64,000 bases of DNA from Cyanophora paradoxa CCMP329 (Eukaryota > Plantae > Glaucophyta): NCBI GenBank assembly GCA_004431415.1, contig QPMI01000255.1:1-64000 (forward strand). The letters are read 5' to 3'. The notes below the pieces were generated by a model, which saw only the letters and a list, made by a program, of their open reading frames with translations, did no database searches and had not been told where the DNA came from. The translations under genes and the position numbers were made by a program. Positions 950 to 35,600 of this stretch are shown here, one piece after another. Each line of letters opens with the position of its first letter. Within the stretch, counting starts at the first letter, position 1.

Positions 950-1990
950 AAAATTCGATCCTAGACAGGCCCGGAGATCTTTCCGCGCGCCCGCGCCGCG
1001 GCGCATGCGCGGAACGATAGCATAAGCATTTGAGATGTAGAAGAAGCCTTCCGCACGGTCTCTAAATGCGCCGGGCCGCGAGGACCCAGCCGACCCCGGA
1101 AATTCGATCCTGGACGGACCTGCACAACTTTCCGCGCGCCCTCGCATCCTCACGCGAGCGCATCGCTACAATTTTCAGTTGACTCCTTTTTAAAGCTTTT
1201 CGCAAGCTCTGCAGGCGCGACAGGGCACGAGAACCCAGCCGACGCAAAAATTCGATCCTGGACATACCCGACGGCAAGAATTCGATCCTAGACAGGCCCG
1301 GAGATCTTTCCGCGCGCCCACGCCGCGGCGCATGCGCGGAACGATAGCATATGCATTTTAGATGTAGAAGAAGACTTCCGCACGGTCTCTAAATGCACCA
1401 GGCCGCGAGGACCCAGCCGACCCCGAAAATTCGATCCTGTACGGACCTGAACATCTTTCCGCACGCCCTCGCATTCTCGCGCATGCGCATCGCTACAATA
1501 TTCATTTGAGATTTTATCAAAGCCTTCCACAAGCTTCGAAGACGCGAAAGAGCACGAGAACCCAGCCGACGGCAAAAATTCGATCCTGCACGGACCCGGA
1601 CATCTTTCCGCGCGCCCACGCCGCGGCGCATGCGCGGAACAATAGCATAAGCATTTGAGATGTAGGCAAAGACTTCCGCACGCTTTGCGTATGCGCCGAG
1701 CCGCGAGGACCCAGCCGACCCCGAAAATTCGATCCTGTACGTATACGGACCTGCACAGCTTTCCGCGCGCCCTCGCATCCTCGCGCGTGCGCATCGCTAC
1801 AATAGTAATTTGAGATCTTTGTTAAGCTTTTCGCGAGCTCCGAGGACGCGACAGGGCGCGAGAATCCAGCCGACCCCGAAAATTCGATCCTGCATGGACC
1901 TGCACGTCTTTCCGCGCGCCCTCGCCTCCGCAGCCCCGCACATCGATGCTATATACATTCGATCGCGAGATTCTGTTTAAGCGATTCGCA
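950..1990. repeat. Internal ~150-bp satellite with alternating A/B monomers (also about 2890-3610, 4530-4950, 5865-7920, 8810-9810)
   Basis: Anchor AATTCGATCCT...CTTTCCGCGCGCCC recurs near 952, 1101, 1250, (1278), 1428, 1578, 1727, 1881. A monomers carry GCATTTGAGATGTAG; B monomers carry GCATCGCTACAAT. Confidence 0.9.
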
Positions 1991-2303
1991 AGCTCTGTGC
2001 ATGCGCCTGGCCGCGAGAACCTCGCCCCTCCCGGGCCTCCTTCCCAACAATATTATAATTAATCTCTTCTCAATCTGCTCCACCCTTTAGTTCCTCAGTA
2101 AATTAATATTCCTCTAGCCGGCCAGCGCTAGCTGGACTGGCCGTCAGCCAGCCAGCTTCCAGCCAGCTGCAGAAAGCTGTTCGCGATCGGCCAGGCCGCT
2201 GGCCAGTCGCTGAGTGCCCTATATATATAGGCCTACTGTAACAGCGGCGAGGGCGTCCGCGAGGCTTCGCCGTACTTAGTGCTCCGCAGGAGCACGGATC
2301 TTG

Positions 2304-3936: not shown

Positions 3937-5261
3937 TCTCAAACCCAAAAACGAACGGGTCCAAATTCCTTTTTTAACCTTTTTTTCCACTCGAGATCCC
4001 CCCTGCTAAATAATTTCCGTGTCGCGACTCCTCGAGGACGAATTATTAATTCTGCCTCGACACGGACGCGATTGCCGCAAATAACACACCTACTCTAACC
4101 CCCACAGACCTCTCTAGATCCATTTTTAGCGTCCTGGCTCCCCTAAGACGACCGCTCTCCCGTGCACGTCGCGCGAATATCGAATTTCCCTCTGGATCGA
4201 TTCCGGTACTTCACCTCCGACAAATGCAGTCCGAGTCACTGAGTCAGAAGGTGGGACCCGGTCCCGCCCGGTCCCGCGACGAAATCGCGCCAGAGACGCC
4301 CCAGAACGATACAGAATGACGGGCGAGGGCGAGCGCATCGCCGCAAGCTCGATTTCGGGCGCCCTCGACGCTGCAGTCCGAACAGTGGGCCGAAATTTGA
4401 TCCTCCCGGTTCCGGCCGGTCCCGCGATGCGCGCAATCGATGCGTACTGGCGCGTATAGACATAGCAGGGCCTGCGCGCCCCCGAAATCCGCTTTTCGGA
4501 GCCGGAACAGCGCAGGAAGGTACCCGACGGCAAAAATTCGATCCCACACGGGCCCGGACATCTTTCCGCGCGCCCACGCCGCGGCGCACGCGCGGAACGA
4601 TAGCATAAGCATTTAAGATGTAGAAGAAGACTTCCGCACGGTCTCTAAATGCACCAGGCCACGAGGACCCAGCCGACCCCGAAAATTCGATCCTTCACGG
4701 ACCTGCACGTCTTTCCGCGCGCCCTCGCATCCTCACGCACGGGCATCGCTACAATATTCATCAGAGATGTTTTAAAATTTTAAAGCCTTTCGCAAGCTCT
4801 GCGGACGCAACAGGGCGCGGCAATCCAGCCGACGCAAAAATTCGATCCTGGCCACGCCTGCACATCTTTCCGCGCGCCCTCGCCTCCGCAGCCCTACACA
4901 TCGATGCTATATGCATTCGAATTCGAGATTCTGTTTAAGCGATTCGCGAGATCTGTGCATGCGCCTGGCCGCGAGAACCTCCCCCCTCCCGGGCCTCCCA
5001 ACAATATTATATAATTAATCTCCTCTCAATCTGCTCCACCCTTTATTTCCTCAGTACATTAATATTCCTCTAGCCGGCCAGCGCTAGCTGGACTGGCCGT
5101 CAGCCAGCCAGCTTCCAGCCAGAAAGCTGTTCGCGATCGGCCAGGCCGCTGGCCAGCCTGCAGCTGGCAGTCGGTGAGTGCCCTGTAGGCCTACTGTGAC
5201 AGCCGCGAGGGCGTCCGCGAGGCTTCGCCGTACTTAGTGCTCCGCAGGAGCACGGATCTTG
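3937..5261 (+). mobile_element. Unit D of Helitron-like array (~1.3 kb, most diverged, fewest internal monomers)
   Basis: Same termini; many substitutions relative to B and C. Confidence 0.75.
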
Positions 5262-13560: not shown

Positions 13561-14610
13561 GCGGCGGCCCGGGCCGCCCGGCGGCTGGGAAGCGGCGATT
13601 CAGCGCCACTACTAGCCCACTACCAGGTAGGCTCAGCGGACAGCGGGTGACAGCGGCTACCGGTAGCCCCGTTAACGTTACTTGGCCGTCCGACTCGGAC
13701 TCACGGCCCGGGAGTCACGGGTGGATCATCGATCATCCGATGCGATCGGATACTAGTACTAGGCCTCCCGAAGTCCCGGGATTGCCGCAGTGCACTCAGT
13801 GACTGCGGCAGCCTGAGTGGACTGTGCACGTGCACGTGGCCCAGCCGCCCAGTGGATTCTGGCCCAGTGGCCGGGGCCCATAACTTGGGCCATAAGTCCA
13901 TCGCCCGGGCCGCCGGGCCCAACCGCGCGCCCAGGAATCCCCAGGATTCGCCCTCACGAGTCACGAGTCAGGGCCTTCGCCTGGTACGGTCACGGCGGTA
14001 CGTACACAGGTTCCAGCGGCATCCAGCCACTGCCAGGCTGCAGCTGGTGGCCCACTGGCCCCGCGCGCGTCGCAGCGCGCAGACTGCATGAGAGTCGATC
14101 GCAACCGCTGAACGTCCATCGTCGCCGCGCCGAGTCGCAGATGGCAAAGGCCGCGCCGTAGGCCCGTAGCTTAGCGCCGTACAGACAGATCTAGCCTAGC
14201 AGAGCAGCTGCAGTTCAAAGAGCAGCCGCAACCCCCCGCGCGATCGACGCGCGCTTGCCAAGTTGAAAGCCGAAGTTAGGAAGGAAAGCAGATATATAGC
14301 CAGCCATATAGACCATCAGATACACCCGCGCGAGTTTACAGGCCACGAACCGTGCCGGTCCAGCTGCAGCATGAGCGCGGATACGGTCGGTAGATATAGA
14401 CAGGCGAATGCCGCATGCGCAGAAGCCCTAGGACAGCGCCGGGCCCTCCTATATGTACGAGCGGCCGGTACAAGTGTGCATGCGGCGCCGACGGTGGTTG
14501 CATATGCATATGCATGTAAGCCTTCGAGTTCGAAGGCACAACCGCATCGCTTCAATGTCTCTCACTTGCGCGGAACAAGTATCCTCTCGGCTGCAGCGCT
14601 TGCACTGGCC

Positions 14611-17600
14611 ATGGTGTTGGCCATGGCTGTTATCGCCGCGGGACAGTCTCCCACGCCAAGCCCGTCGGCCATACCGACCCTCAGCGCGACCAGCACGCCG
14701 CAGTACTTTGACGACGGAAGCGGCCCCGCCGACTACGCCCCAGACACCCACCTCTCCTGGTGCGAGGCGGGCTTGCGCGACGCTCGAGGCTCGCATCTCT
14801 AGCCTTAAGCTTAAGACCGTTGAGCCAATCAATGATGTGTAGCTGTCCGTCTCTAAGATCAAGTCCGAGTTCTTGCATACCCAGCTGCAGCATTACAAAT
14901 CACAGAGCTAGCTAACGCCGCCCCCTTCCTCTGTGCCGCAGGCTCATTGTCGCCCCCGAGGGCCAGGTGGTCGTCCTCGAGTTCACCGGCTTCGACACGG
15001 ATGATTTCGACTACGTCCAGGTGCAGATGGGAATCATTTATATTTAGAGCCCCGCGTTGCAACGTCCGCGCTTGAATCAACTTCGAATGCAGGGTTACGA
15101 TGGCAACAGCACATCTGCGCCGCAGCTCTTTATCGAATTAAGCGGGCAGCCTGCCATGCCCGTTTCCTACATTTCATCGGGCAACACAATTCTCGTCAGA
15201 TTCGACTCCGACAGTAGCAATCAACGTCAGGGGTTCAACGCCACGTATACGGCCGGTAAGACCTCTCAAAACCATTGCGCTGCGGCTGCTTCAACAATAT
15301 AAATCAATTTGATTTGATTTTGACATCGTCACACACGTCGTCTCGGCAGTCGTGCAATTCGAACTCAATGCGACGACGACACCGCAGCAGTTCGACGACG
15401 GCAGCGGTGCAGGCGAATATGCTCCAAACACACACGTAACCTGGTTCGCTGTGCTTTTGACGCATCGATCAGGCTGTCGCTAGCGCGCGCTGTAGGCGTT
15501 TGCGTACATGTATACAACTCGCATGCTGAATATAATCATAGACAACTCATCTAATCTTCCTCTGCTTTCTCGCAGGCTCGTCAGAGGCCCGGTGGACTAC
15601 TGGATTCTCCTCCAGTTCACCAGCTTCGACACAGAGTCGGGGCAGGACTACGTCCGGGTATGCCTCTCAATTTCTAGATCTTGCCTGAGCAACCTTGATC
15701 AGCGCTGGCGCTGTGCGGCCTTTGCTTCGCATCAACTGAGAGCCGACGTTCAATGCAGGGCTACGACGGGAGACACCTCACTTCACGGCAGCTCTTCGCC
15801 TTGAGCGGGCAGCCGAGCGTGCCCTTCGCCTTCGCCTCGTCCAGCAGGGCGATGCGCGTCACGTTCGACTCCGGACCCTCGGTCCAGATGCAGGGCTTTA
15901 ACGCATCGTACACCGCCGGTAGGCTCTTCCTGACTTCCCTTGCATTCGCGGCGCGCTTGCATCGCGCTCACCGGCTCCTGCAGTTCTGTACGGGGCCCAG
16001 GCGTCTTACAATTCGCTCAATGCGACGAGCATGCCGCAGTACTTCGATGACGGGAGCGGACCGTCCAGCTACGACCCATATGCCTCCCGCTCCTGGTGCG
16101 CGAGCGGGATCCCTCCGTACGAGTACTGGCGAGGCCTGCAGCAATGTTGATGCGAACAACTGACGCCGCCCTTTCCCCCGCCCCGGCTCAGGCTCATCAC
16201 CGCTCCCGAGGGTCACGTCGTCCGCATCCAGTTCTTGCATTTTGACACATATTCGGATTCCTTCAACACCGATTACGTAAGAGTGCGTTCTTGCTATTGT
16301 GATCGAGGATCCCAGATCAGCCGCGTGCTGCGCTCTCGAACGATAAACATTCTATACAGGGCTACGATGGGAGCAGCACGGCCGCAGCGCAACTTTTCCA
16401 GCTAAGCGGAAAGCCCGACTTGCTCTCCCTCACCATCAGCGCAACGACGGGAAACACGATGCTTGTCACGTTCGAACCTTCCTCGGATAGTTTCGGATTA
16501 CAAGGCTTTCTGGCTTCGTATTCTGCCGGTAGACACCCCGCCTCCCGCTCGTTTTGTGACTGCGCCAAATGTCATCTCGCAGTACCAATCGCGACAAGTC
16601 CTAGCGCATCAGCAAGCCCGAGCCCGTCGCCCACCCCGAGCCCGTTGCCCATCTCGGCCCTCAGCGCGACGAGCACGCCTCAGTACTTCGACGACGGAAG
16701 CGGCCCCGCCGACTACGCCTCAGACACCCACGTCTCCTGGTGCGTGACAATCTTGCGCGACGCTCGCATCTCATGATGATGGGTTAATGTTAACTATTTG
16801 CCCGTCTCGTACGCGTCCGCCACAGGCTCATCACGGCCCCCGAGGGCCAGAGTGTGCGCATCATCTTCGCCGAGTTCAGCACTGACTACTACGACTTTGT
16901 GCGGGTGCGCCTGGGGGCCCTGTACATGTGGCTAGGGCTGCCATGCGCGCTGCGCCTTCACATTCGGGCGCCATCGGGTCTGCGCTGCGGCTGATCGCGA
17001 GGCTCGCTGCAGGGCTTCGACGGTACCACCACCTCTGCGCCCGTGCTCTTCCAGTTGTACGGGCAGCCATCTTTGCCCCTCCGCTACCGCTCAACGGAAA
17101 ACGCGATGCTCGTCACGTTCGACTCCTCCGCAATCCCATATGGAAGTTTTTCGAGGCAGGGCTTCAACGCCTCGTACTTCGCAGGTAGCTATATATAGCT
17201 GTAGGATCTTTTCCCTGCACCCCGCTTCTGCGTTCATTTCTCACTATTGTTTCCGTAGAGTTTGCGAAATTCACCCTCACTGCAACGAGCACGCCTCAAT
17301 ACTTTGGCGACGGGAGCGGCCCCGCCAACTACGCCCCAGACACCCACCTCTCGTGGTGTGAGGCGGGCTTGCGCGAAGCTCGTATTTCTATGATATCAAT
17401 GCGTATACGTAACTGTCCTTCTCGTCTGCTACAGGCTCATCATTGCCCCGGAGGGCCACATCGTGCGCATCATGCTCACCCAGTTTGTCACTTCCTACCA
17501 AGACAACGTACGAGTGCGCCATGCTGCTCGGACTGCCACGCTGCCCTTACAGACGCCACCGTGCCTGCGCTCCGGCTGATCGTGAGGCCCGCTGCAGGGC

Positions 17601-20600
17601 TATGATGGTAACACCACCGCTGCAACGCTGCTCTTTGAGGTAGCCGGGGAGCTGTATGACGGGCCCTACGGCTACCGTTCGACGGGAAGAGTGATGCTCG
17701 TCACGTTCGATACCGTCATATTTTCAGTTGGGAGTCAGGGCTTCAACGTGTCGTACACCGCTGGTAGCTATAGGCTCTTGTCGCTGCACCCAGCCGCTGC
17801 GTTCATGATCAATTCTCACTACGATTCTGCAGAGCTCGCAAGTGCTCCGCCGATCGCCCTCGCTGCGACGAGCACTCCGCAATACTTCGAGGACGGAAGT
17901 GGCGCGGGCGCCTACGCTCCAGCGATTCGTGATTCCTGGTGCGCGCCGGAATTGCTTGGCACTGGCCGTGGTTGAGCAGTAGAGAGAGTATTTTATCTTG
18001 CAGCTCATGCCTCCCCCCTCCCACGTGTGGCAGGCTTATCACCGCTCCCGAGGGCCAGGTAGTCGTCATTCAGTTTGTCAGCTTTGACACGGAAGCGGGT
18101 AACTATGCATACGAGTCGCACTATGTGCGGGTGCGTTCAGAGAATTGAGCTCCCACCTTGCGATTTCCATTTGTATTGCATGCGCAGCGAACTTACATTG
18201 AATATTAATACAGGGTTACGACGGCAACAGCACCTCTGCGCAGCAGCTATTCGAGCTGGCTGGGCAGTTGGAGCTGCGCGTGCCTTTCTCCTATGTGTCG
18301 ACGGGAGGGAGCATGCTCGTCACATTCGACACCACCCACAAAAACTATTACCAACGGCAAGGGTTCAGCGCCTCTTACGTTTCCGGTAAGTGCCCTCTTT
18401 ATTATAACCGCTATGCAGCTGCTTTTCTCTCTTTAATCGAATCCATCCTCAGCGCTTTACAATGCGGTGGCGCGTACGCTCAACGCCACGAGCACGCCTC
18501 AGTACTTCGACGACGGGAGCGGCGCGGCCAACTACGCCCCGAACACCCACATCTCCTGGTGCGGCGCAAGACCGGCTCTGCTTCCGCCTGCGACTCTCTC
18601 TGTTTGCGATCGCGCGCGACGCCGTGACCGGCCCGCGGCCACCGAGCTCGCGATTGCATGGGACTAACGGAATTTTGCCTCCAGGTTCATCAGTGCACCT
18701 TTTGGACAGTTCGTTCGGGTGCAGTTCAACAGCTTTGACACGGAGCTGGCTTTGGACTTCGTCCGAGTGCGCTTCTTGCGATTCCGCTGCACGCCGGGGG
18801 CTGGTCGATGACGTTCGTGCATTTGCAGGGCTACGACGGGAGCAGCGCCAACGATGCACAAAGAATCTTTGCCTTGAGCGGGCAGCCGGCCGTGCCTTTC
18901 ACCTACGCCTCGTCAGGCAGCTCGATGCTTGTTACGTTCGACTCTGGCTCTGCGGTTCAGAGGCAAGGCTTCAACGTCTCCTACACCGCCGGTAGGCCCA
19001 GCTACCCCCTATACCATATAGCTGGTTGCTCCACGATCCAGGCTCTGCTCACCGTCTCACGGATGTTTAATCTCAGTGGTCTCCAGCGGGCCAGTGCCGA
19101 CATACACTTTCGATGCCACGAGCACGCCGCAGTTTTTCGACGACGGCAGCGGCCCGGCTAATTACCTGCCATACACTCGCAACTCCTGGTGCGCGTTCGC
19201 ACTTGCAAATCGAGCGAAGTAGCTGCGGGAGCATTATCTATAGCTGCTATGAAAACGCCGCTTAAATAATGCACGCGTGCATGATTTAATTTCGACTCCG
19301 TTTCGACGCATGCAGGCTCATCACGGCCCCACCGGGCCAGATCGTCCGCCTCGTGTTCTACGAATTTGAAACAGAACCTTCTTACGACGAAGTGCGGGTG
19401 CGGATTTGTATCTGTGTTATATTTACTGCGCTACTCTGCCTCAAACCATGCTTATCAATGAAAACAGTGGTACGACGGGAGCAGTGCCGCAGCACCGGTT
19501 CTTTTTTATCAGGCTGGTACCCCGTGGGTGCCTTTCGGCTACGTTTCGACAGGCAGCGCGATGTTTGTCACATTCCAGACGAACTCCTACAATCAGGGAA
19601 AAGGCTTCAACGCCTCGTACTCTGCCGGTAAGCTTCGCCCTGCTTCAGCGTGCACGTCGGACCCTGCCCGTTCCTTCGCTTCACACGTTAATCCCTCATG
19701 CACAGAGCTCTCAACCGCGCCTCCAACGATCGCTCTCTCTGCAACGAGCACGCCGCAGTACTTTGACGACGGGAGCGGCGCGGCCAACTACGCTCCTGTG
19801 ACTCGCGCTTCCTGGTGCGCGACGCAGTCGCTCGCGATTGGCACTGCAGCTGGCGATTCCGCCTGCACATGCATGCAGAGATAGTTTGAAACGAATTACG
19901 CACATTACGAATTGCAACTAGTACTAACGCCGCCCCCTCCCCTGTGCGGCAGGCTCATCACCGCTCCCGAGGGCCAGGTCGTCGTTCTCCGGTTCATTGA
20001 CTTCGAACTGGAACCGAGCTACTATGCTTTTGAATCGGACTACGTGCGGGTACGTCGACGCCTGCAGTTGGGAATCAAACCTCCCCTGACCTGGTGATAT
20101 CAACGTTTGCTGCTTTAACTCCAACTGCAATGCAGGGCTTCGATGGCAACAGCACCTCCGCACAGCAACTTTTTAATTTGAACGAGATGGACGGAAAGAT
20201 ACTGCAGCCGCTTTTGCCCTTCTCTTACTTCTCGACGGGGAACACAATGCTCGTCACATTTGAATCCGGCAACTTCGTCCAAGGGCCCGGCTTCAATGCC
20301 TCGTACACTTCCGGTACGTGATTTCAACTTAATTCGAAGCTGCTTTATTCAACTGATTGTGCGCATGATCATGAATCCCTTTCAGCGCTTTACAGTGCGC
20401 TGCTGACGCGTACCCTGATCGCGACGGACACGCTCCAGTACTTCGACGACGGGAGCGGTGCGGCCAACTACGCTCCTCACACCCACATCTCCTGGTGCGG
20501 CTTATGCCAAGCCCCGCACACTCGTATACGTCGCTGCCTGTACATGTGGCTCGCGATCGCTCGGCTCGCCTTCACGACCGGCTCGCGGCCGCTGAGCTTG

Positions 20601-23600
20601 CAATTGCTTGCGTCGAGCTAACGGCGGCCTGCCTGCGCCTTTTGCAGGCTCGTCACCGCCCCCGAGGGCCAGGTCGTTCGGCTGCAATTCATCAGCTTCG
20701 ACACGGAGCTGGCAGCCGACTTTGTTCGGGTACGCTCCTTGCCATTCCGGTCCGCTGCACGCCGGCGCCTGGCCGATGGCGTGCATGCAGGGCTACGACG
20801 GGAGCAGCGCCAATGCGCAGAGGCTCTTTTCTGTAAGCGGGCAGCCGGCCGTGCCTTTTACCTATGTCTCGACGGGGAGAACGATGCTTGTTACGTTCAG
20901 CTCCGGCTTCGCGGCTTCAAAGCAAGGCTTCAATGTCTCCTACACCGCCGGTAGGCCCAGCGGCCCCTTACATCACATAGCCGGTTGCTTCACGATCCCG
21001 GCTCTGCTCACCGTCTCACGAATATTGCATCTCAGTAGTCTCCAGCGGGCCAGTACCGACATACACTTTCAATGCAACGAGCACGCCGCAGTTCTTCGAC
21101 GACGGCAGCGGCCCGGCCGACTATGAAGCATCAACTAGCAATACCTGGTGCAATCGAGCATCGGCCATGGCTTCGCAGGCTGTGGCACCTCCAGCTGATT
21201 TTTGATTTTCCTGCAGGCTCATAACCGCGCCAGAAGGCCAAATTGTCGTCATCCAGTTTATCAGCTTTGACACAGAAGCCTCAAACGATTATGTCCGGGT
21301 GCGGAGCTTTCCAGCACCGCATCTGCACCCCCAAGAGGAAATCGTAGAGAATATTTTCATAATGCTGCATCTAAAACAAGCCACGTACGGCAGGGCTACG
21401 ACGGTTCCAGCACTGCTGCAACACAGCTTTTCGAAAGTAGCGGACAACGGACGGCGCCCTTCGCTTTCTTTTCGACGGGAAGAACGATACTCGTTACATT
21501 CTCGTCCAACGCAGTCGTCCAAAAGCCAGGGTTCAGCGCCTCTTACACTGCCGGTGGGCGGCACTTGCCCCGCAACTGTTTCATTGTGTTGACTTGCCTT
21601 CGCCCTGTCTCACCATTACCTTGATCAGCGCTCTACAGTGCCGTGGAGCGCACCCTCAGTGCAACAAGCACGCTTCAGTACTTTGATGACGGGAGCGGTG
21701 CGGATGAATACACAACCAACACACACATATCCTGGTGCGCAGCGCACGTTTCGCTTTATGCATGATTTTCATCTTTTTGGATTCGAACTACTTCTTCGGG
21801 TTTCCAACAGGCTCATCTCGGCCCCGAGCAACCACTGGATTCTGTTGCAGTTCACCAGCTTTGACACAGAATCGGGGCAAGACTACGTCCGGGTGCGCCC
21901 TTCATTCCAAACCTGATGCTCCTTGCACACTGTCCCTCCATGAGTCGCATCGACTGAAAGTCCGGCAGGGCTACGATGGAAACAGCATCGCCGCACGGCA
22001 GCTCTTTGCCGTGAGCGGGCAGCCGAGCGCACCCTTCGCCTTCGCCTCGTCGGGCGGCTCGATGCGGATCACGTTCGACTCCGGGCCCTCAGTTCAGATG
22101 CAGGGCTTCAATGTCTCGTACACCGCCGGTAGGCTCTTTCATGTTTACCATCCCTTGCAAATGCGACGCGCTCGCACCGCGCTCACCGGCTCTTCCAGTT
22201 CTGTACGGGGCCCAGGAGTCTTACAATTTGCTCAATGCAACGAGCACGCCGCAGTACTTCGATGACGGGAGCGGACCGTTCAGTTACTCGTCATATACCT
22301 CCCGATCGTGGTGCGCATTCGAGATCCCTCTGCAATAACGAGGCCTGCAATCATATCGATGATATGGCTGACGCCGTCCTTCCCCCCGCTCCGTCGCAGG
22401 CTCATTACCGCCCCCGAGGGTCATGTCGTCCGCATCCAGTTCTTATATTTCGAAACAAAGTCGGATATATACTCTGAAGATTACGTCAAAGTGCGTTTCA
22501 GCCTTGTCATCGGGAATCAGCCCCGTACGCGTGCTGCGCTCTTGATCTGAATCTGAAACTCGCCATGCAGGGCCACGACGGGGACAGCACGGCTGGAGCG
22601 CAACTTTTCCGGTTGAGCGCAAGGCCAGACGTGCTCTCTCTTAGCAGCAGCGCATCAACGAGCAACAAGATGCTGGTCACTTTCAATTCCGGCACGTCCT
22701 ACGTTCACAACCCCTCCGACGGCACGCAATTTCAGGGCTTTTTGGCTGCGTACTCGGCAGGTATACTTCTCCCCGCTTGATTTGCGACTTTGGCCGATAT
22801 CGGTTTTAAATCGCAGTTCCGACTTCCCTTGGCGCGTCACGAAGCCCGAGCCCGTCGCCCAGCCCGAGCCCGTCGTCCGCCCCGAGCCCGTCGGCCATCT
22901 CGGCCCTCAGCGCGACGAGCACGCCTCAGTACTTCGACGACGGAAGCGGCCCCGCCGACTACGCCCCAGACACCCACGTCTCCTGGTGCGTGGCGAGCTT
23001 GCGTGGCGCTTGCATCTCTAGCCTTAAGACCGCTGGGCCAATCAATGATGTGTAGCTGTCCGTCTATAAGACTGACTGGAGTGCTTGTACACCCCGAAGT
23101 ATAAATCGCAGCTCGAGCTCACGCCGCCGCCTCCTCTGCGCGGCAGGCTCATCGTCGCCCCCGAGGGCCAGGTGGTCGTTCTCGAGTTCACCGGCTTCAA
23201 AACCGAGTCTGATTTTGATTACGTGCGGGTGCGTCGGGAACTTACAAACCCAGGGTGCGATGTCCACGCATGTAGCTTGTGATTAAATCAAGTGCAGGGC
23301 TACGACGGCAACAGCTCCGTCGCGCAGCAGCTCTTCGACTTGAGCGGGGAACCTTCCATGCCCGTTTCTTACACCTCGACAGGCAACACAATGCTCGTCA
23401 CGTTCGACTCCGACAGCAGCATTCAGCTTCAGGGGTTCAACGCCACGTACACAGCGGGTACGGCGTTTCAAACTCAGTGAAGCGATTATAATTAGATCAA
23501 CATTTTGTCATTGACGTTGTCGTGGCAGTCGTGCCGGTCGTGCAGTTTGAATTCAACGCGACGAGCACGCCTCAATACTTCGACGACGGAAGCGGCCCCG

Positions 23601-26600
23601 CCGACTACGCATCAGACACTCACATCTCCTGGTGCGTGGCGAGCTTGCGTGGCGCTTGCATCTCTAGCCTTAAGACCGCTGGGCCAATCAATGATGTGTA
23701 GCTGTCCGTCTATAAGACTGATTGGAGTGCTTGTACACCCCGAAGTATAAATCGCAGCTCGAGCTCACGCCGCCGCCTCCTCTGCGCGGCAGGCTCATCG
23801 TCGCCCCCGAGGGCCAGGTGGTCGTTCTCGAGTTCACCGGCTTCAAAACAGAGTCTGATCTTGATTACGTGCGGGTGCGTCGGGAACTTACAAACCCAGG
23901 GTGCGATGTCCACGCATGTAGCTTGTGATTAAATCAAGTGCAGGGCTACGACGGCAACAGCTCCGTCGCGCAGCAGCTCTTCGACTTGAGCGGGGAACCT
24001 TCCATGCCCGTTTCTTACACCTCGACAGGCAACACAATGCTCGTCACGTTCGACTCCGACAGCAGCATTCAGCTTCAGGGGTTCAACGCCACGTACACAG
24101 CGGGTACGGCGTTTCAAACTCAGTGAAGCGATTATAATTAGATCAACATTTTGTCATTGACGTTGTCGTGGCAGTCGTGCCGGTCGTGCAGTTTGAATTC
24201 AACGCGACGAGCACGCCTCAATACTTCGACGACGGAAGTGGCCCCGCCGACTACGCCCCACACATGGACATCTCCTGGTGCAAAGCGGGATATTGGCCTA
24301 GCTAGGCGATATCATTGCGATATCATAGGACTAGCTGACGTTCGAGATAACCGGCGCCTGCATCACCAATTCTTTTTGCGGCAGGCTTATAACCGCGCCG
24401 GAAGGCCAGGTCGTTCTACTTCAGTTCACTAGTTTTGATACAGAATTTCCGTCCGATGAAGTCCGGGTGCGAAGCTTGCCAGCCCCGCGCAGCCCGTTTG
24501 GAATCTTCTCCGCCCTTCACTTAACTCGTTTCCATGAATTTAAAGCTGCTTCTAAAATGGAACCATGCAGGGCTACGACGGCAACAGCACTGCTGCAACA
24601 CCACTTTTCGGGCTGCGCGGGCAGCTGACTGGACCCTTCGCTTTCTTTTCAACGGGAAGCGCAATGCTCGTCAAATTTGCATCCAACTCGGCTGTACAGA
24701 AGCCAGGTTTTAACGCTTCATACACTGCTGGTAGGCGGCACTCACCGCCGCTGCCCCCGCGTTAATCTGTCTGCGCTCTCTCTCACGCCCTCCGTCTCTC
24801 AGCGCTCTACACTGACGTTGCGCGCACTCTAAATGCAACTAGCATGCCTCAGCAATTTGACGACGGCAGCGACGTTGGGGCATACGCGCCAAACAGACAC
24901 ATCTCCTGGTGCGACGTGCACGCGTCGCGTTAGATGGCGCGTCACAGCGGCTCGCCACTGCTGCCAAGCTTTCTATAAGCTTGCTGCGCATATGCATATG
25001 CATGCTGCTGAGCGTGTCTCACCTTCCTCGGGTTTATCATAGGTTCATCTCGGCCCCGGCCAACCACTGGGTTCTCCTCCAGTTCACCAGCTTCGACACG
25101 GAGTCGGGGCAGGACTACGTCCGGGTGCGCCCGTCATTCCGATCCTGGAGCCCCTTGCCCTCCGTCCCGCCATGAATCGCATCGACTGAGAGTCATTCCG
25201 GGCCTCATTACGGGTGCGCCCGGAGCGACCTTGACCGAACGTCGATGCAGGGCTATGATGGAATGCGGAGCTACGACGGGAGCAGCAATGCTGCGCGGCA
25301 GCTTTTTGCCTTGAGCGGGCAGCCGAGCGCGCCCTTGGCCTTCGCCTCGTCGGGCGGCTCGATGCTCGTCACGTTCGACTCCGGACCCTCGGTTCAGATG
25401 CAGGGCTTCAACGTCTCGTACACCGCCGGTAGGCTGTTTCCTGATCGATGCATGACTTCCTTTGCAACTGCGGCGCGCTCGCACCGCACTAGTACTCACC
25501 AGCGCATTCAGTTATGTACGGCGTCCAGGGGTCTTCCAACTTCCTCACCGCAACGAGCACGCCGCAGTACTTCGATGACGGGAGCGGACCGTCCAGTTAC
25601 ACAAGCTCGGGATATATGTCCACGACCACCTCATGGTGCGCATGCGTGATAGCTCGCACGCGCGAGGGCTGACGCCGCACTTTGCCCCGTGCGGGATCCC
25701 TCCGAACGAATACTGGCGAGGCCTGCGACCATATGTATTGATGCAATAGACTGACGTTGCCCTTTCCCCCGCTCCGTTGCAGGCTCATCACCGCCCCCGA
25801 GGGTCATGTCGTCAGCATCCAGTTCTTGCATTTTGACACGGAGTCGGGTTACTACAGCGACTATGTCACAGTGCGTTCTGCTCGAACGCATCGTGATCGG
25901 GGAACACGGATAGCCCCGTGTTGCGCTCTTCAGCGCTGAACTATCCACACAGGGTTACGACGGGGACAGCACATCGGCAGCGCAACTGTTCCAGCTGAGC
26001 GGAAAGCCGGACTTGGTCTCTCTTCACATCAACGCATCGACAAGCAACAAGATGTTTGTCACGTTCGATCCTGGGTACCTCACTTATGGTCAATTCCAAG
26101 GCTTTCTGGCCGCGTATTCTGCCGGTACTTTCCTTCCCTCTGCCCGCTCTAGATCTTATATAATTACCTCATCGATAACCCCTCCCCCATTATTTTTCGC
26201 GCCGTGCGACCGACACTTACGTCACAGTCTCGATAAATCCGAGCCCATCGCCAGAACCAAGCCCGTTGCTCAGCCCGAGCCCGTCTCCAAGCCCGAGCCC
26301 TTCACCCAGCCCGAGCCCGTCGCCCACCCCAAGCCCGTCGCCTCGCCCGTCCCTCGGCGCGACGAGCACGCCGCAATACTTCGACGATGGGAGCGGGGCT
26401 GCCGACTACGCCCCAGGACTTCAAATCTCCTGGTGCGAGGCAGGCTTGCACGGCGCTGATATCGATTTGTAACTGTCATTCTCGCCTGCTACAGGCTCAT
26501 TACGGCCCCGGAGGGCCAGGTTGTTCGCATCAAATTTGTCGACTTTTCCACCGACTCCTACGACTATGTTCGAGTGCGCCTTGCGGCTCGGGGTTCCTGC

Positions 26601-29600
26601 GCACGATGCCCCTTCAATCCGTCACCGACAGTTGCCTGCGCATACGCATGCGCTTCGACTGATCGCGGGGTCCGCTGCAGGGCTATGATGGTACAACCAC
26701 TGCTGCGGCCGAGCTCTTTGGGATATATGGGCAGGCGTATGGCATGCCCGTAGGCTACCGGTCCACAGGAAGCGCGATGCTCGTCACGTTCGAAACCGGA
26801 TACCCATATTATTCGTATCCAAGGAGAGGCTTCAACGCCTCGTACTCTGCCGGTAGGCTCTTATCGCTGCTTTCAGTCCTTTCGAATTCGCATCTCACCA
26901 TGATTTCTCGGCAGTCATGCCGGTCGTGCAATCCTTACTCAGTGCAACGAGCACGCCGCAGTACTTCGATGATGGCAGCGGTGCAGACAACTATGAACCA
27001 GTCACCCGCGCCTCCTGGTGTGTTATCGTTCGATAGTCTCGGCCATGCTATAGCTGTTTCAGGCCATGGCGCCTAATTATAAATGTGCCTTTATTACGCA
27101 GGCTCATAACCGCACCGGAAGGCCAAATCGTTGTCCTCCAGTTCGTCAGCTTCGACACAGATTGGGACGATCATGTCCGGGTGCGGAGCTTGCATCTGCC
27201 TGCCCGCACTCCCCCTAGGCCTCGAGAATCGTTGGCGGCCTTCCGACTGCAAAATTTCAAAACATTCTGGCGGCCTAAAGCCAAGTTTCGATTATATCCA
27301 CGTCGACGGCGTCGAGGGCCTGAGGTTCCATATGCTTGCAGGGGTACGACGGCAACAGCACTGCTGCAACACAAATCTTTGTGGCAAGCCGGAAGCGAAC
27401 TGCGCCCTTTGCTTTCTTTTCGACGGGGAACACAATGCTCGTTACATTCGAATCAAGTACCTTCGACCAACGACCGGGGTTCAACGCCTCTTACAGTTCC
27501 GGTATGCATATCATTTTACTCCTGCCGCTGTGCGACTGCTTCCTTTGACTGACTGTGTAATCGAATCCATTCTCAGCACTCTACAGCGCGGTGGCGCGTA
27601 CCCTAAACGCGACGGGCGCGCTCCAGTACTTCGACGACGGGAGTGGCGCGGCCAACTACGCTCCTCACACTCACATCTCCTGGTGCGGTGCAAAACCGAC
27701 CCTGAGTTTGCGATCGCGTCGGATACAGCTAGCTAGCCTGCTAACGCCGTCCTACCTGCGCCCGTTTGCAGGCTCATCACCGCCCCCGAGGGCCAGGTCG
27801 TCCGGCTGCAGTTCGCCAGCTTCGACACGGAGCTGGCGTCCGACTATGTCCGAGTGCGTTTCTTGCGATTCCGCTGCACGCCGGGGGCTGGTCGATGACG
27901 TTCGTGCATTTGCAGGGCTACGACGGGAGCAGCGCCAATGACGTGCAGAGGATCTTCGCCTTGAGCGGGCAGCCGGTCGTGCCTTTCACCTACGTCTCGC
28001 TGGGTAGCTCGATGCTCGTTACATTCGACTCCGGACCCTCGGTTCAGATGCAGGGCTTCAATGTCTCGTACACCGCCGGTAGGCCATGAATTCGTGATCC
28101 CTACATCGTTTAGCCAGCTGCTCTACGATTTTTCATTGTCTCACGGCCGCGGATTTTGCATCTCAGTTGTCTACAGCGGGCCAGTGCCGACGTATACTTT
28201 CGATGCGACGGGCACAGCGCAGTTTTTCGAAGATGGCAGCGGCCCGGCCAATTACGAACTGCGCGCTAGCACATCCTGGTGCCATAGGGTTATATGCATG
28301 CCATTGCAGGCTATGCGCAAGAATGTTTAAGTTTTCCGCAGGCTCATAACCGCGCCAGAAGGTCAAATCGTCGTCCTCCAGTTTGTCAGCTTCGACACAG
28401 AGCAATCAAACGATTACATCCGGGTAAGGAGCTTGGAAATCTTTGCCGCCCTCAAACAGCCTCTATAAAGCTGCTTCTAAAATGGAACAATGCAGGGCTA
28501 CGATGGCAACAGCACTGCTGCAACTCAGCTCTTCGCCCTAAGCGGACAGCCGACTGTGCCCTTCTCTTCGATTACGACGGGGCGCACAATGCTCGTCACG
28601 TTCTCGGCCAGCGCGCCCTTCCAGAGGCAAGGCTTCAACGCCTCCTATACTGCTGGTAGGCATTTTTGCTGCGACTGTTTCCTTTCTTTAGTTGACCTGG
28701 TGCTCTGTCTCACGCCCTCCGTCTCTCAGCGCTCTACACTGACGTTGCGCGCACCCTTGCTGCAACGAGCACGCCTCAGCAGTTTGATGACGGCAGCGGT
28801 GTGGGAATATACGCCCCGAACACGCACAAGTCCTGGTGGGTGTCGTATCCAATTATGGAACATGTAAAGGTACACTATTTCTAACATTCTCCGTGTTAAC
28901 GTTCTTGCATGCGCAGGCACATTACAGCCCCGGCGGGTCACTGGATTCTCCTCCAGTTCACCAGCTTCGACACGGAGTCGGGCCAAGACTACGTCCGGGT
29001 GCGCGCCAGTGTCGTGGGGCCTTCGCATTGCTCCGACTGAATCGATGTCGATGCAGGGCTACGACGGGAGCAGCACCGCTGCGCCACAGCTTTTCACCTT
29101 AAGCGGGCAGCCGGTCCTGCCTTCCTATGCCTCGACGGACAACTCGACGCGCGTCACGTTCGACTCCGGACCCTCGGTCCAGATGCAGGGCTTCAGCGCG
29201 TCGTACACCGCCGGTAGGCTCTTCCCAGACTTCCCTTGCAAGTGCTGCGCGCTTGCATCGCACTCACCGGCTCCTTCAGTTCTGTACGGCACCCAGTCGT
29301 CTTACAATTTGCTCAATGCGACGAGCACGCTGCAGTTTTTCGATGACGGGAGCGGTCCGGCCAGTTATGGCCCAGCGTACACCTCTACCTCGTGGTGCGC
29401 GTGCGGGATCGCCCCGCACTGGCGACGCCTGCAACCTGCCCGATTACTGAAGCCGCCCTTCCCCCACTTTGTTACAGGCTCATCACCGCCCCCGAGGGGC
29501 ATGTTGTCCGCATACAGTTCCTAAAATTCGACACAGAATCGGGATCCTATTCTGAAGACTACGTCACAGTGCGTTCTGCTCGAACGCATCGTGATCTGGG

Positions 29601-32600
29601 AACACGGATAGCCCCGTGTTGCGCTCTTGAACGCTGAACTATCCACACAGGGTTACGACGGGGACAGCACATCGGCAGCGCAACTGTTCCAGCTGAGCGG
29701 AAAGCCGGACTTGGTCTCTCTTCACAACGCATCGACAAGCAACAAGATGCTTGTCACGTTCGATCCTGGGTACTTCACTTATGGTCAATTCCAAGGCTTC
29801 CTGGCTGCATATTCTGCCGGTAGTTTCCTTCCTCCGCGCCCTCCACGCGCTCTTACCGCTCTTACCCTCATCCCCTTCCCCATTCGTTTTTGCGACTGCG
29901 ACCGACATTTTCGTCACAGTATCGATAAATCCGAGCCCATCCATATCGCCAAGCCCGAGCCCGTCGCACAGCCCAAGCCCGTCACCCACCCCGAGCCCGT
30001 CGCCCATCTCGGCCCTCAGCGCGACGAGCACGCCTCAGTACTTCGACGACGGAAGCGGCCCCGCAGACTACGCCCTAGGCACCCACGTCTCCTGGTGCGA
30101 GTCGGCTTGCGCGACGCCCGTGTCTCCGATCCAGTTCTGGATCCAGCTGATGATATTGATGTGTTAATATTGTCCGCTACAGGCTCATCACAGCCCCGGA
30201 GGGCCAGGTTGTGCGCATCATATTCACCGAGTTCGTCACTGACTCGAGCGACTACGTTCGAGTGCGCGCATGCGTCCTCCGGAAACCACCCCGGGAGGGT
30301 GGGGGTGGGGGGGGTGGGGGGTGGGGGGGGATGAGGGGCGGGGAGCGGGGGCCCGGCGGGGAGCCAGAGGGTACGCGGCACCGTGATGTTGAAGGGGTAG
30401 TCGACGAGGGTAGGGGGGGGGGGGGGGGAGGGGGGGGCCCGATTTGATTCCGGGGCGCCACCGGGCCTGCACTGCGACAAGAACTGATCGCGGGGCCCAC
30501 TGCAGGGCTACGACGGCACCACCACCGCTGTGACTCAGCTCTTCCAGGTATCTGGGCAGCCGGAGAACTTGCCCTACGGCTACCGCTCAACGGGAAGCGC
30601 GCTGCTCATCACGTTCGACTCCTCCGCATCCCCGTATGGGATGTACCCGAGGCAGGGCTTCAACGCCTCGTACACTTCCCGTAGGCTCCTACTACAGTCT
30701 TCTCTTTTGATTACCGTCACCAACTAGTACTCAACTTGCAGTTTTCTTGAGTCCTCCGGCAATCGCCCTTTCTGCAACGAGCACGCTGCAGTACTTCGAC
30801 GATGGCAGCGGCGCGGCCGACTACGATCCACTCACATTCATTTCGTGGTTCGTGACGTGTGCAGGCGCTCGCTATGGGGATGGATTGCAGCTCACGCCAC
30901 CCTCCTTCCCCGTGCGGCAGGCTCATCACCGCCCCCGAGGGCCAGGTCGTTGTCTTCCAGTTCTCTAGCTTCAATACGAGTGGAAACGACTATGTGCAAG
31001 TGCGTTGTGGGACTCGAGCTCCCATCTTGTGATATACACCTCGGTGACTCAATCTCAAATACAGGGCTACGACGGCAATACCACCGACGCACGTCTGATT
31101 TTCCAGTGGAGCGCGACGCCAACCATACCCTACACTTATTCCTCGACGGGAAACACAATGCTCGTTACGTTCACCACCGACAGCAGCGATCAACGCCCGG
31201 GGTTCAACGCCACGTACACAGCGGGTACGATCGCATCGAATTTCAAAATTCGATCATTGACGTCGACGTTCTGCAGTCTTGCGAGTTGCCCTAAGTGCAA
31301 CCTACACGCCTCAGTACTTTGACGACGGCAGCGTCGCAAGCGAAGATGCCCAGAATACACATGTTTTCTGGTGCGCAGCTCACGTGTTGCGATCGGTTTA
31401 GGCGTCGGTTTGGAGCAGCTCACCACAGCCTGCCTAGCCTAGTTGCTCCACAGCGGCTCGCTGCTGCTGTGCATATGCATATGCATGCTGCTGAGCGTGT
31501 CTCACCTTCCTCGGGTTTCTCGCAGGGCCATCTCAGCCCCGGCCAACCACTGGGTTCTCCTCCAGTTCACCAGCTTCGACACAGAGTCAGGGCAAGACTA
31601 CGTGCGGGTGCGCCCCTTATTCCGAGCATGAACCCTCTTGTCCGCGCCGGCGCCGTAAGGCCTTCGCATCGCTTCGACTGAGATCTAGAGTCGACGTCGA
31701 TGCAGGGCTACGATGGGAGCTTCCTGCCTGCGCAGCAGCTCTTCGCCTTAAGCGGGAAGCCGAGCATGCCCCTGGCCTTCGCCTCGTCAGGCAACAATGG
31801 CAACGCATTGCTCGTCACGTTCGACTCCGGACCCTCGGTTCAAATGCAGGGCTTTAACGCGTCGTACACCGCCGGTAGGTTGTCTCCTAATTATAACTTC
31901 CTTTACGGCTGCTGCATGCTTGCATCGCGCTCACCGGCTCTTTCAGTTATGTACGGCACCCAGGCGTCTTACAATTCGCTCATTGCAACGAGCACGCTGC
32001 AGTTCTTCGATGACGGGAGCGGAACTTCCTTTTACAACCCATTTGCCTCCCGCTCGTGGTGCGCGTGAGGGATCGTTCTGCACTGGCGAGGCCTTCCGCA
32101 GTACCCCTGCAGCTGCCCGATGGCCTTCCGCGTGCGGGATCCGTCCGAAGGCTGATGCCGCGGTCCCCGTGCCCCATCGCAGGCTCATCACGGCTCCCGA
32201 GGGCCATGTCGTCCGCCTTCAGTTCTTGAATTTCGACACAGGATCGGGATACTTCAACGATTACGTCAGAGTGCGTTTTCGACGTTGTGATGAAAGGTCG
32301 GCCTCTCGGCGCTTCAGGCTGAAAAATCCATGCTGCAGGGCTATGACGGGAACAGCACTGCTGCAGCGCAACTGTTCCAGTTGGCCGGAAAGCCAGAATT
32401 ACTTTCTCTCAACATCAACGCATCGACGGGCAACACGATGCTTGTCATGTTCGAACCCTTCTCGTCCGGGTTTTCCGGTTTCCAGGGCTTCCTGGCTGCG
32501 TATTCTGCAGGTAGTGTCCTCTCCCCAGCTATATCTAGCGCTCATTAATATTTTGGGATTGCGGTCGATTTAAACTCGCAGTGTCGACATCCCCTGGCGT

Positions 32601-35600
32601 GGCTTCAAGCCCGACCCCGTCGCCCAGTCCGAGCCCGTCTCCAAGCTCGAGACCGTCGCCCACCCCAAGCCCGTCGCCCAGCACCACGCCCTCCCTCCTT
32701 CCAAATCCGACCCCCAGCCCCAGCCCATCGCCATCGCCCAGCCCGAGCCCGTCCCCCCTGCCGTTGGCGGCGAGCGTGACGCCCTCTGCCTCGCCGAGCC
32801 CGACGCGGACGCCGACGCCGAGCCCCTCGCGGACGCCGAGCCCGAGCCCGACGCGAACGCCGAGCCCGAGTCCCTCGGCGACGCCCTCCGCGTCCCCGAC
32901 GCCCTCCCCGACGCCCTCCCCCACGCCCTTCCTCGAGCCCTGCGCCGTCGCCCAGGAGCTCGAGGCCGGCGTCGGCGTCGGGCCTGCCCTGCAGCTCAAC
33001 GGCACGACGCGCGGCAGGAAGGACTTCCTGCCGGCCACCTTCTCCAACAACCCCAGCGGCGAGGCCTGGTTCAGCTTCACGCCGAAAAGCGCAGGGTTCG
33101 CACAGACATTTGCCATAAATTTATTGCGTGCACGTGGAAGCCGCGTGCATGTGGATATATGAGCGCCTTTCGCGCAGGGAGGTGGACGTGATCATCTCTA
33201 CGTGCTCCCCTCTAACGGAGTTCGACACGATTCTCTGGATTCTCCCCGCGTCAATATGCCCTGTCGGGCGAGCTACGAGCAAAAATGTGCCTACAGTCGG
33301 CTTCAATGGTACAAATTCGTGCTTTTGTGGCGGTCGATCGCGATGTGCTCATTGATGGTTTTCTGCAGACGATGCTACCGTCGCCGAATGCCCACTGAAC
33401 GGGGGCGGGGGCCGAATGTCGGCACTCAAGACGCGTGTGTCAGGGAACGGAACCCGATACTTCATTGTCGTGGAAGGCGCGTCGCTGCCTTACGATTGCT
33501 TGGCGTTCTCTTCTCAGAATAAGCGCAGGGTTTTACAAGGAGGAGGGAACGTTCGGGCTGACGCTGCAACTCAGCGAGCCACCCGCGCCCGCGACCCCCT
33601 CCCCGACCCCCACGCCGCTGCCGGCCCCGAACAGCACTTTCGTTCCGTGTTCCACGTCGACCTCGGTGGGGGCACAGGCTTCGATTCTCGGGTCCACATC
33701 GACGGCGTACATAGGGAGCAACAGCAGTGCAGAGGCCTGGTTCAACTTTTTCGCGCCGTCCAGCGGGTGCGGCACTCTTGCAATTGCTCAAATATTTCGC
33801 CCGGTGCCTTTCGGCTTTGACATTAATATTTCGAATCATCTATGTGAGCAGTGTCTTCTTCCTGTCGACCTGCTCGCCGGAAACGAACTTCAACACTTCC
33901 ATCTGGCTGCTGGACGCGAGGACATGCCCGATCGCTGACTTCTCGGCCGGCTCGATCGTCCGAAAGAGCGGTGCAATGTGCAAACGTGCGGCTCGCCCCC
34001 GTATGCTCAGCGGCCTTGCAGAGGGTGTCGACCAAGAGGCTCCGGAGTGCAACGCCGCAACCTCGCCGCTCGCCGCAACGCTGGTCGTAGAAGTGGCCGC
34101 TCAGACGCAGTACTACATCATGGTCAAATGTGCGCCGATCGCATTTGCAATTGCAACATTCCGCCTTTCCCCCGGCCCGGCGCGTAGCGGGTGCTGACGG
34201 AGAGGGCAGCGCGCGGGGATGGAGGTGGCGCTTTCAGGTTGACAGTGTCCCTCACCAGCGCCACGTTTTCGCCGCTCCTTCTGCCTACGAGCACACTCAC
34301 CTCGAGCGAGGGCGCGGTGACGGCGCTGGCCTGGAGCACGAGCGCGCGGCTCTTCGCGACGGGCCACAGCAACGGGGTGGTCGTCATCTGGAGCGCCACC
34401 AGCGGCGTCGCCCGGAACCGGATCGCGGCCCACTCTAGGGCGATCGCCAGCCTCGCCTTCTCCCCAGACGACGCGCTGTTCGCCTCGGCGAGCGCGGACG
34501 GGCGCATCCGAGTCTGGTTTGTCTCCTCGCTGACGCGGGTGGACGAGTACGGCGAGCATGCCGGCGGGGTCACGGCCCTCGTCCTCACCAAGCGCTTCAT
34601 TGCCTCGAGCAGCGAGGACGGCCGCCTCGTGATCCGCACCGTCGCCAACAAGAAGGTCACCTGGGACCGCAAGAAGGCCCACGGGGGCGCCCCCGTGCGG
34701 GACATCTCCGTCTCGCTGGACGGCGCCCTGCTCGCGTCGGGCGGCGAGGACGGCCTCGTGTGGCTCTTCTACCTGCGCTCCGCCCGCTCCCTCGCCCTCT
34801 CAGCCTTCTCCCGGCCCGTCTCCAAAGTCGAGCTCTCTGCAGACGGCCGCCTGCTTGCGGCGGCGGCCGCTAGCTCCAGCGGGTCGGATTACGCGGCCGC
34901 CTGCTTTGACGAGGTGGTCAAAGTATGGAGGGTCGAGAGCCTTGCGCTCGCCTACTCCCTCTCGGGGCACTGCGGGCGGCTTGCCGCAATAGCTTTCAGC
35001 CCCGACAGTCACTACCTGCTGACGTCGTCCCGCGACGGACTGCTGCGAACCTTCGACGCCGAGACAGGCGCCCTGCTGCGGGTTCGGGCGGAGTCGTCCT
35101 CCTTCCCTCCGCTGGGCGCCACGACAGTCTCTCCGGACGGCCTGCAGGCATTGGCAGTCTCGGGATTGGACAGGCACCGACTGCAGCTTTTCGATCTGAC
35201 CAACACCGTTGAGGTCAATGTCACCCAAGGCCAAATCCTGCCTTTCTCTAGTTTCGGTGCGTCTCGAACATTAATCCTCTGCGCTCCGTGGTCACACGTC
35301 TGCGGTCCCCCAGAGATGTTCGACACGTCCTCGCTCATGGCTAGTCTGACAAGCGCGCCGACGATCCTGGACGTGTCCGCCACCAACCCGCGCATCTCGT
35401 TCCCGAGCCAGCAGGGCGGCTTCGCAACGTCATGGGTGCTCCGCGCGCCCAAGGGGTCGGCGGTCGCAGTCAACTTCACCACCTTCTCGACGGCTTCTAC
35501 CGCAAGCGTTTCCGTGCGTCCATTAGGCAACTCTCGTGCCCTTTAGAATATCTCACTCCACGAACGTGCAGGTGTTTGAAGGGACGGACCGGTCGGGGGT

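Follow-up and report, generated by a model that had tools for sequence, protein, structure and literature searches.

A disulfide-free array of 28 CUB modules with subtype-specific loops in the glaucophyte Cyanophora paradoxa

Introduction

What kind of protein is encoded by a glaucophyte gene in which one module is repeated 28 times, and do the differences between the copies serve recognition? The question is raised by the assembly of Cyanophora paradoxa CCMP329 (GCA_004431415.1). Positions 1 to 64,000 of its contig QPMI01000255.1, the stretch that we analysed and refer to as the window, carry a single eukaryotic gene segment (14597-32510, + strand) with 28 tandem modules (M1 to M28) of about 115 amino acids each. 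An earlier sequence-only reading of the window had described these modules as CUB domains with near-constant framework strands and two variable Tyr/Ser-rich loops at the Ca2+ and ligand site. It proposed that the loops were under diversifying selection and formed an antibody-like repertoire within one chain.

CUB arrays are usually treated as an animal invention, with cubilin, the complement proteases and the neuropilins as the familiar cases. A literature search on CUB domains in Cyanophora or glaucophytes found nothing on the subject. We consider it probable that the window holds the N-terminal part of an intact, selectively maintained gene for a cubilin-like, lineage-specific, extracellular multi-site binding array. 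The evidence comes from the reading frame, the fold, the order of the module subtypes and the rates at which loops and core have evolved.

Gene structure

Motif scans of the three forward frames located 28 copies of a three-part unit at 14.6-32.5 kb, exactly the number counted in the sequence-only reading. When joined, the 84 exons give 10347 nt or 3448 codons with zero stops, and the splice sites are canonical throughout (GT at 84/84 donors and AG at 84/84 acceptors). The 83 introns range from 52 to 244 nt with a median of 81 nt, which agrees with the mean intron length of 86 bp given for C. paradoxa (PMC6704402). Every module is built from three exons with intron phases 2-0-1. Exon A has a terminal ....SW motif and a phase-2 end, exon B carries loop 1 followed by DYVR and has a phase-0 end, and exon C, with the consensus GYDG....LF.LSG.P......STG..MLVTF-[loop 2]-GFNASYTA, has a phase-1 end.

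A hydrophobic N-terminal segment (14566..14643, +; Kyte-Doolittle window 1.75) lies immediately 5' of the first (SP)n linker and probably serves as a signal peptide or signal anchor. The Met of MAVIAAG, where the public gene model begins, is a candidate start. At the other end, a Ser/Pro/Thr-rich linker exon (approximate extent 32580..32960, +; stop-free frame 32539-33159, repeats 32794-32902) is in the phase expected after M28, so that the gene runs on past 32510 and into non-CUB domains.

A profile made from the 27 distinct exon C translations was compared with 1.84 billion representative proteins. The top match, at 632 bits, was P0001 (EukProt EP00741 Cyanophora_paradoxa P007021, gene tig00001071_g6793.t1), a public model of 1085 amino acids that starts at the Met of MAVIAAG. 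It contains M12, M14, M15 and M21 intact, with splice junctions as in the 84-exon model (window 14597-28078). Many of the other modules are skipped or run together in it, and its end lies in the intron after M21, into which it reads. Judged by its exons, tig00001071_g6793.t1 is plainly a truncated and mis-spliced version of the same gene. The genome paper states that its own Augustus models need manual curation (PMC6704402).

CUB fold

The 28 modules are CUB domains, as the sequence-only reading had it. Against the Pfam CUB family PF00431, exon C of M1 by itself reaches 25.1 bits (gathering threshold 21.4; profile positions 63-110), and P0001 matches the family with E = 1.1e-104 in eight stretches, the best of which spans positions 5-110 of 110. 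Among solved structures the best match to M15 by sequence is cubilin CUB5-8 (3KQ4; E = 1e-19). Two modules, M15 (subtype a, defined below) and M4 (subtype d), were folded. The AlphaFold2 model of M15, from a 36-row alignment, has nine strands and a mean predicted local distance difference test score (pLDDT) of 95.9. Foldseek comparison of this model with the PDB gave 77 matches at E <= 1e-3, and among the matches listed 50/50 are CUB domains. The best is neuropilin-2 CUB1 (6gh8; TM score 0.88, root-mean-square deviation 1.7), and the model also superposes on CUB domains of TSG-6, PCPE-1, MASP and cubilin. The predicted structure fits a jelly-roll beta-sandwich of about 110 residues. In the model of M4, which has a long loop 2 (pLDDT 92.6), the inserted loop is coil with a confidence of about 77.

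A typical CUB domain has four cysteines in two disulfides (C1-C2 and C3-C4); in 28/28 modules we find none. The median among 160 related proteins is 2.2 cysteines per domain, and just one other protein has zero. CUB2 of ADAMTS13 is likewise without one disulfide (PMC8051872), and missing cysteines therefore do not exclude membership of the family.

Module subtypes and duplication history

A tree of the modules resolves seven subtypes: a (M1, M14 and M15), b (M2, M12, M17, M23 and M27), c (M3, M13, M18, M24 and M28), d (M4, M5, M19 and M25), e (M6, M9, M20 and M26), f (M7, M10 and M21) and g (M8, M11, M16 and M22). Their order along the gene is a higher-order repeat, a b c / d d e f g e f g b c / a a g b c / d e f g b c / d e b c, each slash marking an (SP)n linker. 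All blocks lie on the + strand. The first consists of M1 (14597..15255; exons 14597-14759, 14942-15020 and 15093-15255), which has a Ser/Pro linker before it, and of M2 and M3 (15350..16528), with three exons apiece. M4-M13 follow at 16583..22760, M14-M18 at 22817..26124, M19-M24 at 26228..29819 and M25-M28 at 29920..32510; M4, M14, M19 and M25 each open with an (SP)n linker, that of M19 being the longest (tandem repeat 26239-26342). The long Tyr-containing loops of the M4-M13 block are in M4, M6, M9 and M13.

Introns of modules of the same subtype are still alignable at 70-98% identity, which indicates that duplication at the DNA level took in entire blocks of several modules. At synonymous sites, modules of one subtype have diverged by 0.3-0.6. 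The tandem duplication that gave M14 and M15 (22985-24277; unit 646 bp) is very recent: the introns are 161, 69 and 71 nt long in both copies and 99-100% identical, and the coding parts have few differing sites (synonymous difference, pS, 0.06). Mean core identity is 0.74 within subtypes and 0.61 between them (0.48-0.75), and several positions outside the loops have an entropy above 2 bits, so the framework is less constant than had been supposed.

Some local features were recorded alongside. Intron 2 is 96% identical between M18 and M24 (25871-25952 and 29569-29650) and 98% identical between M7 and M21 (18767-18828 and 27854-27915), values far above those of the synonymous sites in the flanking exons (pS 0.3-0.4); either local gene conversion or an intron element under constraint is indicated. 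In M17, a six-residue internal duplication at the start of exon C (25251-25271) is present in the public model too, and M9 has a six-residue insertion in its L7 loop (NEMDGKIL).

In a tree of 87 domains, 28/28 modules form one clade (SH-aLRT, the Shimodaira-Hasegawa-like approximate likelihood-ratio test, 99). Its sister group (support 91) comprises CUB domains of Gloeochaete wittrockiana (EP00276_P024250, here P0099) and of an MMETSP protein (P0144). Animal CUB domains come next, and the Bacteroidota arrays lie outside, apart from one stray domain. Given the short domain, the modest support and an uncertain root, we name no donor. Recent horizontal transfer from Bacteroidota was considered, as the top non-self matches are bacterial, and was rejected because the tree groups the modules with glaucophyte CUB domains, beside those of animals.

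Loop variation and the Ca2+ site

The most length-variable segments of the module alignment are loop 1, between FDT and DYV (columns 93-101; 3-9 residues), and loop 2, between TF and GF (columns 161-179; 9-17 residues), so that the two loops singled out by the sequence-only reading do vary in both length and sequence. Alignment to cubilin 3KQ4 places loop 1 at L5, where it is four residues shorter than in animal CUB domains, and loop 2 at L9. In solved CUB structures the acidic residues that bind Ca2+ are on L5 and L9, as is the ligand site (PMC8051872).

The variation also sits at one end of the fold, as had been expected. With loops assigned to ends from strand order (loop parity) in the AlphaFold model and not from coordinates, the four loops at the L3/L5/L7/L9 end have a mean entropy of 1.57 bits and a summed length range of 24 residues, compared with 0.90 bits and four residues for the four loops at the opposite end; the strands have 1.22 bits. 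The ratio of loop to core entropy is 2.0. In ten other CUB arrays (four from Bacteroidota, five from molluscs and one from a bird) it is 1.1-1.5, and L9 is fixed at nine residues in nearly all of them.

This variation is organized by subtype: loop identity falls from 0.53 within subtypes to 0.27 between them. Six modules (M2, M12, M17, M21, M23 and M27) have an identical loop 2, DSGPSVQMQ, and the five modules of subtype b share the loop 1 ESGQ. Every loop string quoted in the sequence-only reading is found in the module alignment; they were, however, a selective sample, since loops have the minimal length, as in bacterial CUB domains, in 15/28 modules. Subtypes a, b and f keep short loops, which are invariant in b and little changed in a, and long loops with Tyr are confined to subtypes c, d and e (13 modules). 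The short loops of the Bacteroidota matches suggest that short loops are ancestral and that the long Tyr/Ser loops are derived insertions.

Enrichment in Tyr and Ser was borne out in part. Both loops have about a twofold excess of Ser, an ordinary finding for surface loops. Tyr makes up 11.7% of loop 1 against 5.9% (p = 0.013, with modules that are not independent), the Tyr-rich cases belonging to subtypes c, d and e, and 5.3% of loop 2. Across the 28 modules, Tyr, Phe and Trp taken together are not enriched in loop 1 and are depleted in loop 2.

As summarized from Gaboriaud et al. (2011) in PMC8051872, Ca2+ in the Ca2+-binding CUB subfamily is coordinated by a Tyr in L3, a Glu at the start of L5, an Asp at the end of L5 and an Asp at the start of L9. 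The Tyr is present in 27/28 modules, the Glu in 18/28 (with Asp in five more) and the first Asp in 27/28; the DGSG..Y loop and the Glu/Asp positions are strongly conserved across modules. The canonical L9 Asp (F+3) is found only in M1, M14, M15 and M26 (4/28), and 13 modules have Gly there. At F+1, two positions before the canonical one, an Asp or Glu is present in most modules. The loops thus occupy the L5 and L9 positions of the Ca2+ and ligand site, but the Glu/Asp/Asp triad assigned to them by the sequence-only reading is not general, and classical Ca2+-dependent binding is expected, from these residues, in only a minority of modules.

Selection on loops and core

The ratio of nonsynonymous to synonymous substitution (dN/dS, omega) was estimated with NG86 on 12 independent sister pairs and with the GY+F3X4+G4 codon model in IQ-TREE. 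Core omega is 0.25 (NG86) or 0.21 (GY), values that signify purifying selection and a gene that is maintained. For both loops together omega is 0.47 by NG86, which is below the neutral value (p = 0.003), and 0.55 by GY; the respective estimates are 0.32 and 0.82 for loop 1 and 0.56 and 0.48 for loop 2. The nonsynonymous to synonymous odds ratio of loops versus core is 2.1 (p = 5e-5). In protein sequence the loops change at about twice the rate of the core, yet no faster than neutral. Binding-loop dN/dS significantly above 1, which together with high allelic or somatic diversity would mark an immune-type hypervariable repertoire, is not seen.

The subtypes differ in this respect. The loops of subtype b have no nonsynonymous difference (pN = 0) at pS = 0.46, and their perfect conservation over five old copies indicates that this loop surface, at least, is functional. 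In subtype d loop omega is about 1.1, which is not significant.

Origin and function

Our explanation is as follows. A three-exon module with phase-1 borders was duplicated within the gene, in the glaucophyte lineage, with the reading frame preserved. The module first diverged into subtypes a-g, after which multi-module blocks, recurrently d-e-f-g-b-c, were duplicated along with their introns, with Ser/Pro-rich linkers between the blocks. The loop differences at the Ca2+/ligand end (L3, L5, L7 and L9) mainly reflect old divergence between subtypes together with weaker constraint, and subtypes c, d and e have gained longer Tyr/Ser/Gly insertions that evolve nearly neutrally. The product would be a surface or matrix protein that works like cubilin, its several different binding sites strung together in a fixed, germline-encoded order. 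The hydrophobic segment before M1, the 46 N-x-S/T sequons, several of which are at conserved positions, and the (SP)n linkers together suggest an extracellular and probably glycosylated product, in which the linkers are probably extended and glycosylated. Cubilin-like action is the most likely mode by analogy of mechanism, and no orthology is implied.

A bolder extension, which we hold to be improbable, concerns the 13 of 28 modules in subtypes c, d and e. Their extended L5 and L9 loops on a disulfide-free scaffold might form a germline-encoded panel of distinct sites with which a free-living alga recognises particles, microbes or mates, an independent and non-animal multi-specific array. Given the phase-1 borders of every module, combinations could be varied further if splicing left out entire modules.

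Several points weigh against the binding-array explanation or limit it. The third acidic Ca2+ ligand is present in so few modules that binding of the cubilin type may not apply to most of them, and the surface or matrix location and the Ca2+ binding of the array are predicted. The clustering of variable sites in space is deduced from the order of the strands. Comparison of paralogues is a weak test of dN/dS, given short loops that are hard to align with certainty and some saturation at synonymous sites, and there may have been episodic positive selection at a few loop sites. Four RNA-labelled contig sets compared with 14400-20400 gave contigs only on the low-complexity (SP)n stretch 16613-16651, and the fraction of sampled locus words in RNA-labelled runs was 0.00. 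Four runs did contain the locus, all from the same sample, dated 2012, with the library type unrecorded. The splice model is drawn from sequence logic and agrees in part with the Augustus model.

The alternative that survives best gives the array a mainly structural role, as a long glycosylated spacer or a fibre of the matrix in which CUB domains are rigid beads and loop differences are neutral drift at unconstrained surface positions, with no role in binding. The likeness of the (SP)n linkers to those of glycoproteins in walls or matrices counts in its favour, as do the incomplete Ca2+ triad of most modules, a loop omega near neutrality in subtypes c-g and a loop pN of about 0.29, close to the divergence of the introns. 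We nevertheless think it unlikely. Loops of subtype b that are identical in protein in five modules despite a 46% synonymous difference speak for a specific function of the loop surface, the subtype order has been kept through the block duplications, and the DGSG..Y loop and the Glu/Asp positions are strongly conserved.

We regard as slightly less plausible still the proposal of diversifying (positive) selection on the loops, which would make up an antibody-like repertoire of many specificities for recognition of prey, pathogens or self and non-self. It draws on the loop/core contrast and the 9-17 residue range of L9, both beyond those of the ten comparator arrays, on the Tyr/Ser/Gly-rich insertions of subtypes c, d and e, on the omega of about 1.1 in subtype d together with a few pairs above 1, and on the location of the variation at the ligand-binding end. 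Pooled loop omega (0.47-0.55), however, is significantly below neutral and never significantly above 1, and neither Tyr, Phe and Trp together nor Tyr in loop 2 is enriched. The loops are specific to subtypes within a seven-type higher-order repeat and are not individually hypervariable, and six modules share loop 2; the synonymous divergence within subtypes reflects old divergence and not ongoing turnover. No somatic or allelic mechanism of diversification was seen, with the locus in runs of one sample only. Three outcomes had been named in advance as telling against the repertoire. Two of them, a loop dN/dS of 1 or lower and a lack of aromatic enrichment, were largely what we found, whereas the third, variable sites scattered over the fold, was not.

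That the repeats are a decaying or never-expressed array, a pseudogene or an annotation artefact, would agree with the lack of RNA contigs on exons in four runs and with the fragmentary public model, but is made very improbable by 3448 stop-free codons in 84 exons with canonical splice sites throughout and by a core omega of about 0.2 (0.21-0.25) at a synonymous divergence of 0.3-0.6.

Comparison with known systems

Cubilin, an animal multi-ligand endocytic receptor with 27 tandem CUB domains, offers the closest parallel to the binding array that we favour. Both have some 27-28 uninterrupted CUB domains in one chain, and in both different domains have different L5 and L9 loops and hence possibly different binding sites. 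Ligand binding by cubilin uses the Ca2+ loops (PMC8051872). The two are not orthologous: the Cyanophora modules form their own glaucophyte clade, apart from animal CUB domains. A cubilin orthologue would have an N-terminal region and eight EGF repeats followed by 27 CUB domains, and upstream of the Cyanophora array there is no EGF repeat, the array standing directly after the hydrophobic segment and linker. Cubilin-like arrays have on average two to three or more cysteines per domain, whereas the Cyanophora modules have none, and core identity is about 33% in the former and 63% among the latter. Compared with cubilin, most Cyanophora modules have an L5 that is four residues shorter and the third Asp is present in 4/28; unlike cubilin, the Cyanophora array is broken into blocks by (SP)n linkers.

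Outside the glaucophytes the highest profile scores per domain, 75-87 bits, belong to CUB arrays of Bacteroidota that are secreted by the type IX secretion system (T9SS), such as P0002 and P0010, which carry a Por_Secre_tail. They share with the Cyanophora modules the motifs F-x-DGSG-x-x-Y, FDTE-xxx-D-x-V-x-V-YDG and MLV-x-F, the last followed by a nine-residue L9, and also a short L5 that lacks the second disulfide. The bacterial domains differ in retaining the first disulfide pair, in their fixed L9 length and in a loop/core entropy ratio of about 1.4, and they occur with the T9SS sorting tail and PKD and BACON domains, with neither introns nor (SP)n linkers. Bacteroidota T9SS cargo with 8-15 tandem CUB domains (P0002, P0010, P0011 and many others) is abundant in metagenomes, and a 'bacterial-type' CUB domain with one disulfide seems to be widespread.

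The glaucophyte arrays P0099 and P0144 are closer relatives. Their sister CUB domains are also in tandem and share ..SW-LI-x-AP.. with the Cyanophora modules. They differ in that cysteines are retained, they have about ten domains and they are open reading frames (ORFs) from transcriptomes only; the likeness is known at the level of domains and not of orthology.

Antibody complementarity-determining regions, variable lymphocyte receptors, Dscam and fibrinogen-related proteins resemble the Cyanophora array in having a conserved beta-sandwich with sequence and length variation in the loops at one end, some of the loops containing Tyr, Ser and Gly. The array differs from those repertoires in its loop omega below 1, in loops that are shared by subtype and in the six modules with the same loop 2.

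Neighbouring sequence

Downstream of the array, on the + strand, lies a WD40 propeller ORF (34191-35543). The same strand has more CUB-like pieces at 35.4-36.3 kb, IPT/TIG domains near 42.7 and 45.5 kb, a right-handed beta-helix at 49.9-50.3 kb and a transmembrane-like segment at 55.07-55.15 kb, all of these positions being approximate; a low-complexity tail comes after the transmembrane-like segment. Two copies of a domain with the motif ..EAWF.F.P.., assigned to no family, also lie within 32539-56445 (+). No Pfam family was significant for the ORFs at 32.5-34 or 35.5-37 kb. The features in 32539-56445 (+) may all be part of one giant gene with the CUB array. Just 5' of the transmembrane-like segment a 167-bp unit is duplicated in tandem with 100% identity (54209-54542). 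Towards the ends of the window, positions 1-11000 hold dense tandem arrays with periods of 149 bp and about 327 bp, the G+C content falls to 48% at 10-12 kb, and 58000-64000 has 82-83% G+C with a 19-bp repeat of the CCGCCCC type at 63543-63629.

Conclusions

One consequence is a correction of the annotation: the product has at least 3448 amino acids, and probably many more, where the public model has 1085. The array also carries a caution, in that a conserved scaffold with variable loops is the default for the odd-numbered loops of CUB domains and is not in itself evidence of immune-like selection.

For the family, the array shows that the CUB fold can persist without any disulfide. A glaucophyte has built a 28-module array of cubilin length independently, by intragenic duplication, and the relatives of this array occur in a second glaucophyte and, judged by profile score, among Bacteroidota. 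The modules form a dated series of paralogues in which the same scaffold bears ligand-end loops that are either strictly conserved or freely evolving. Such a series would be useful for studying how binding loops diversify, and its disulfide-free scaffold may be of use in protein engineering.

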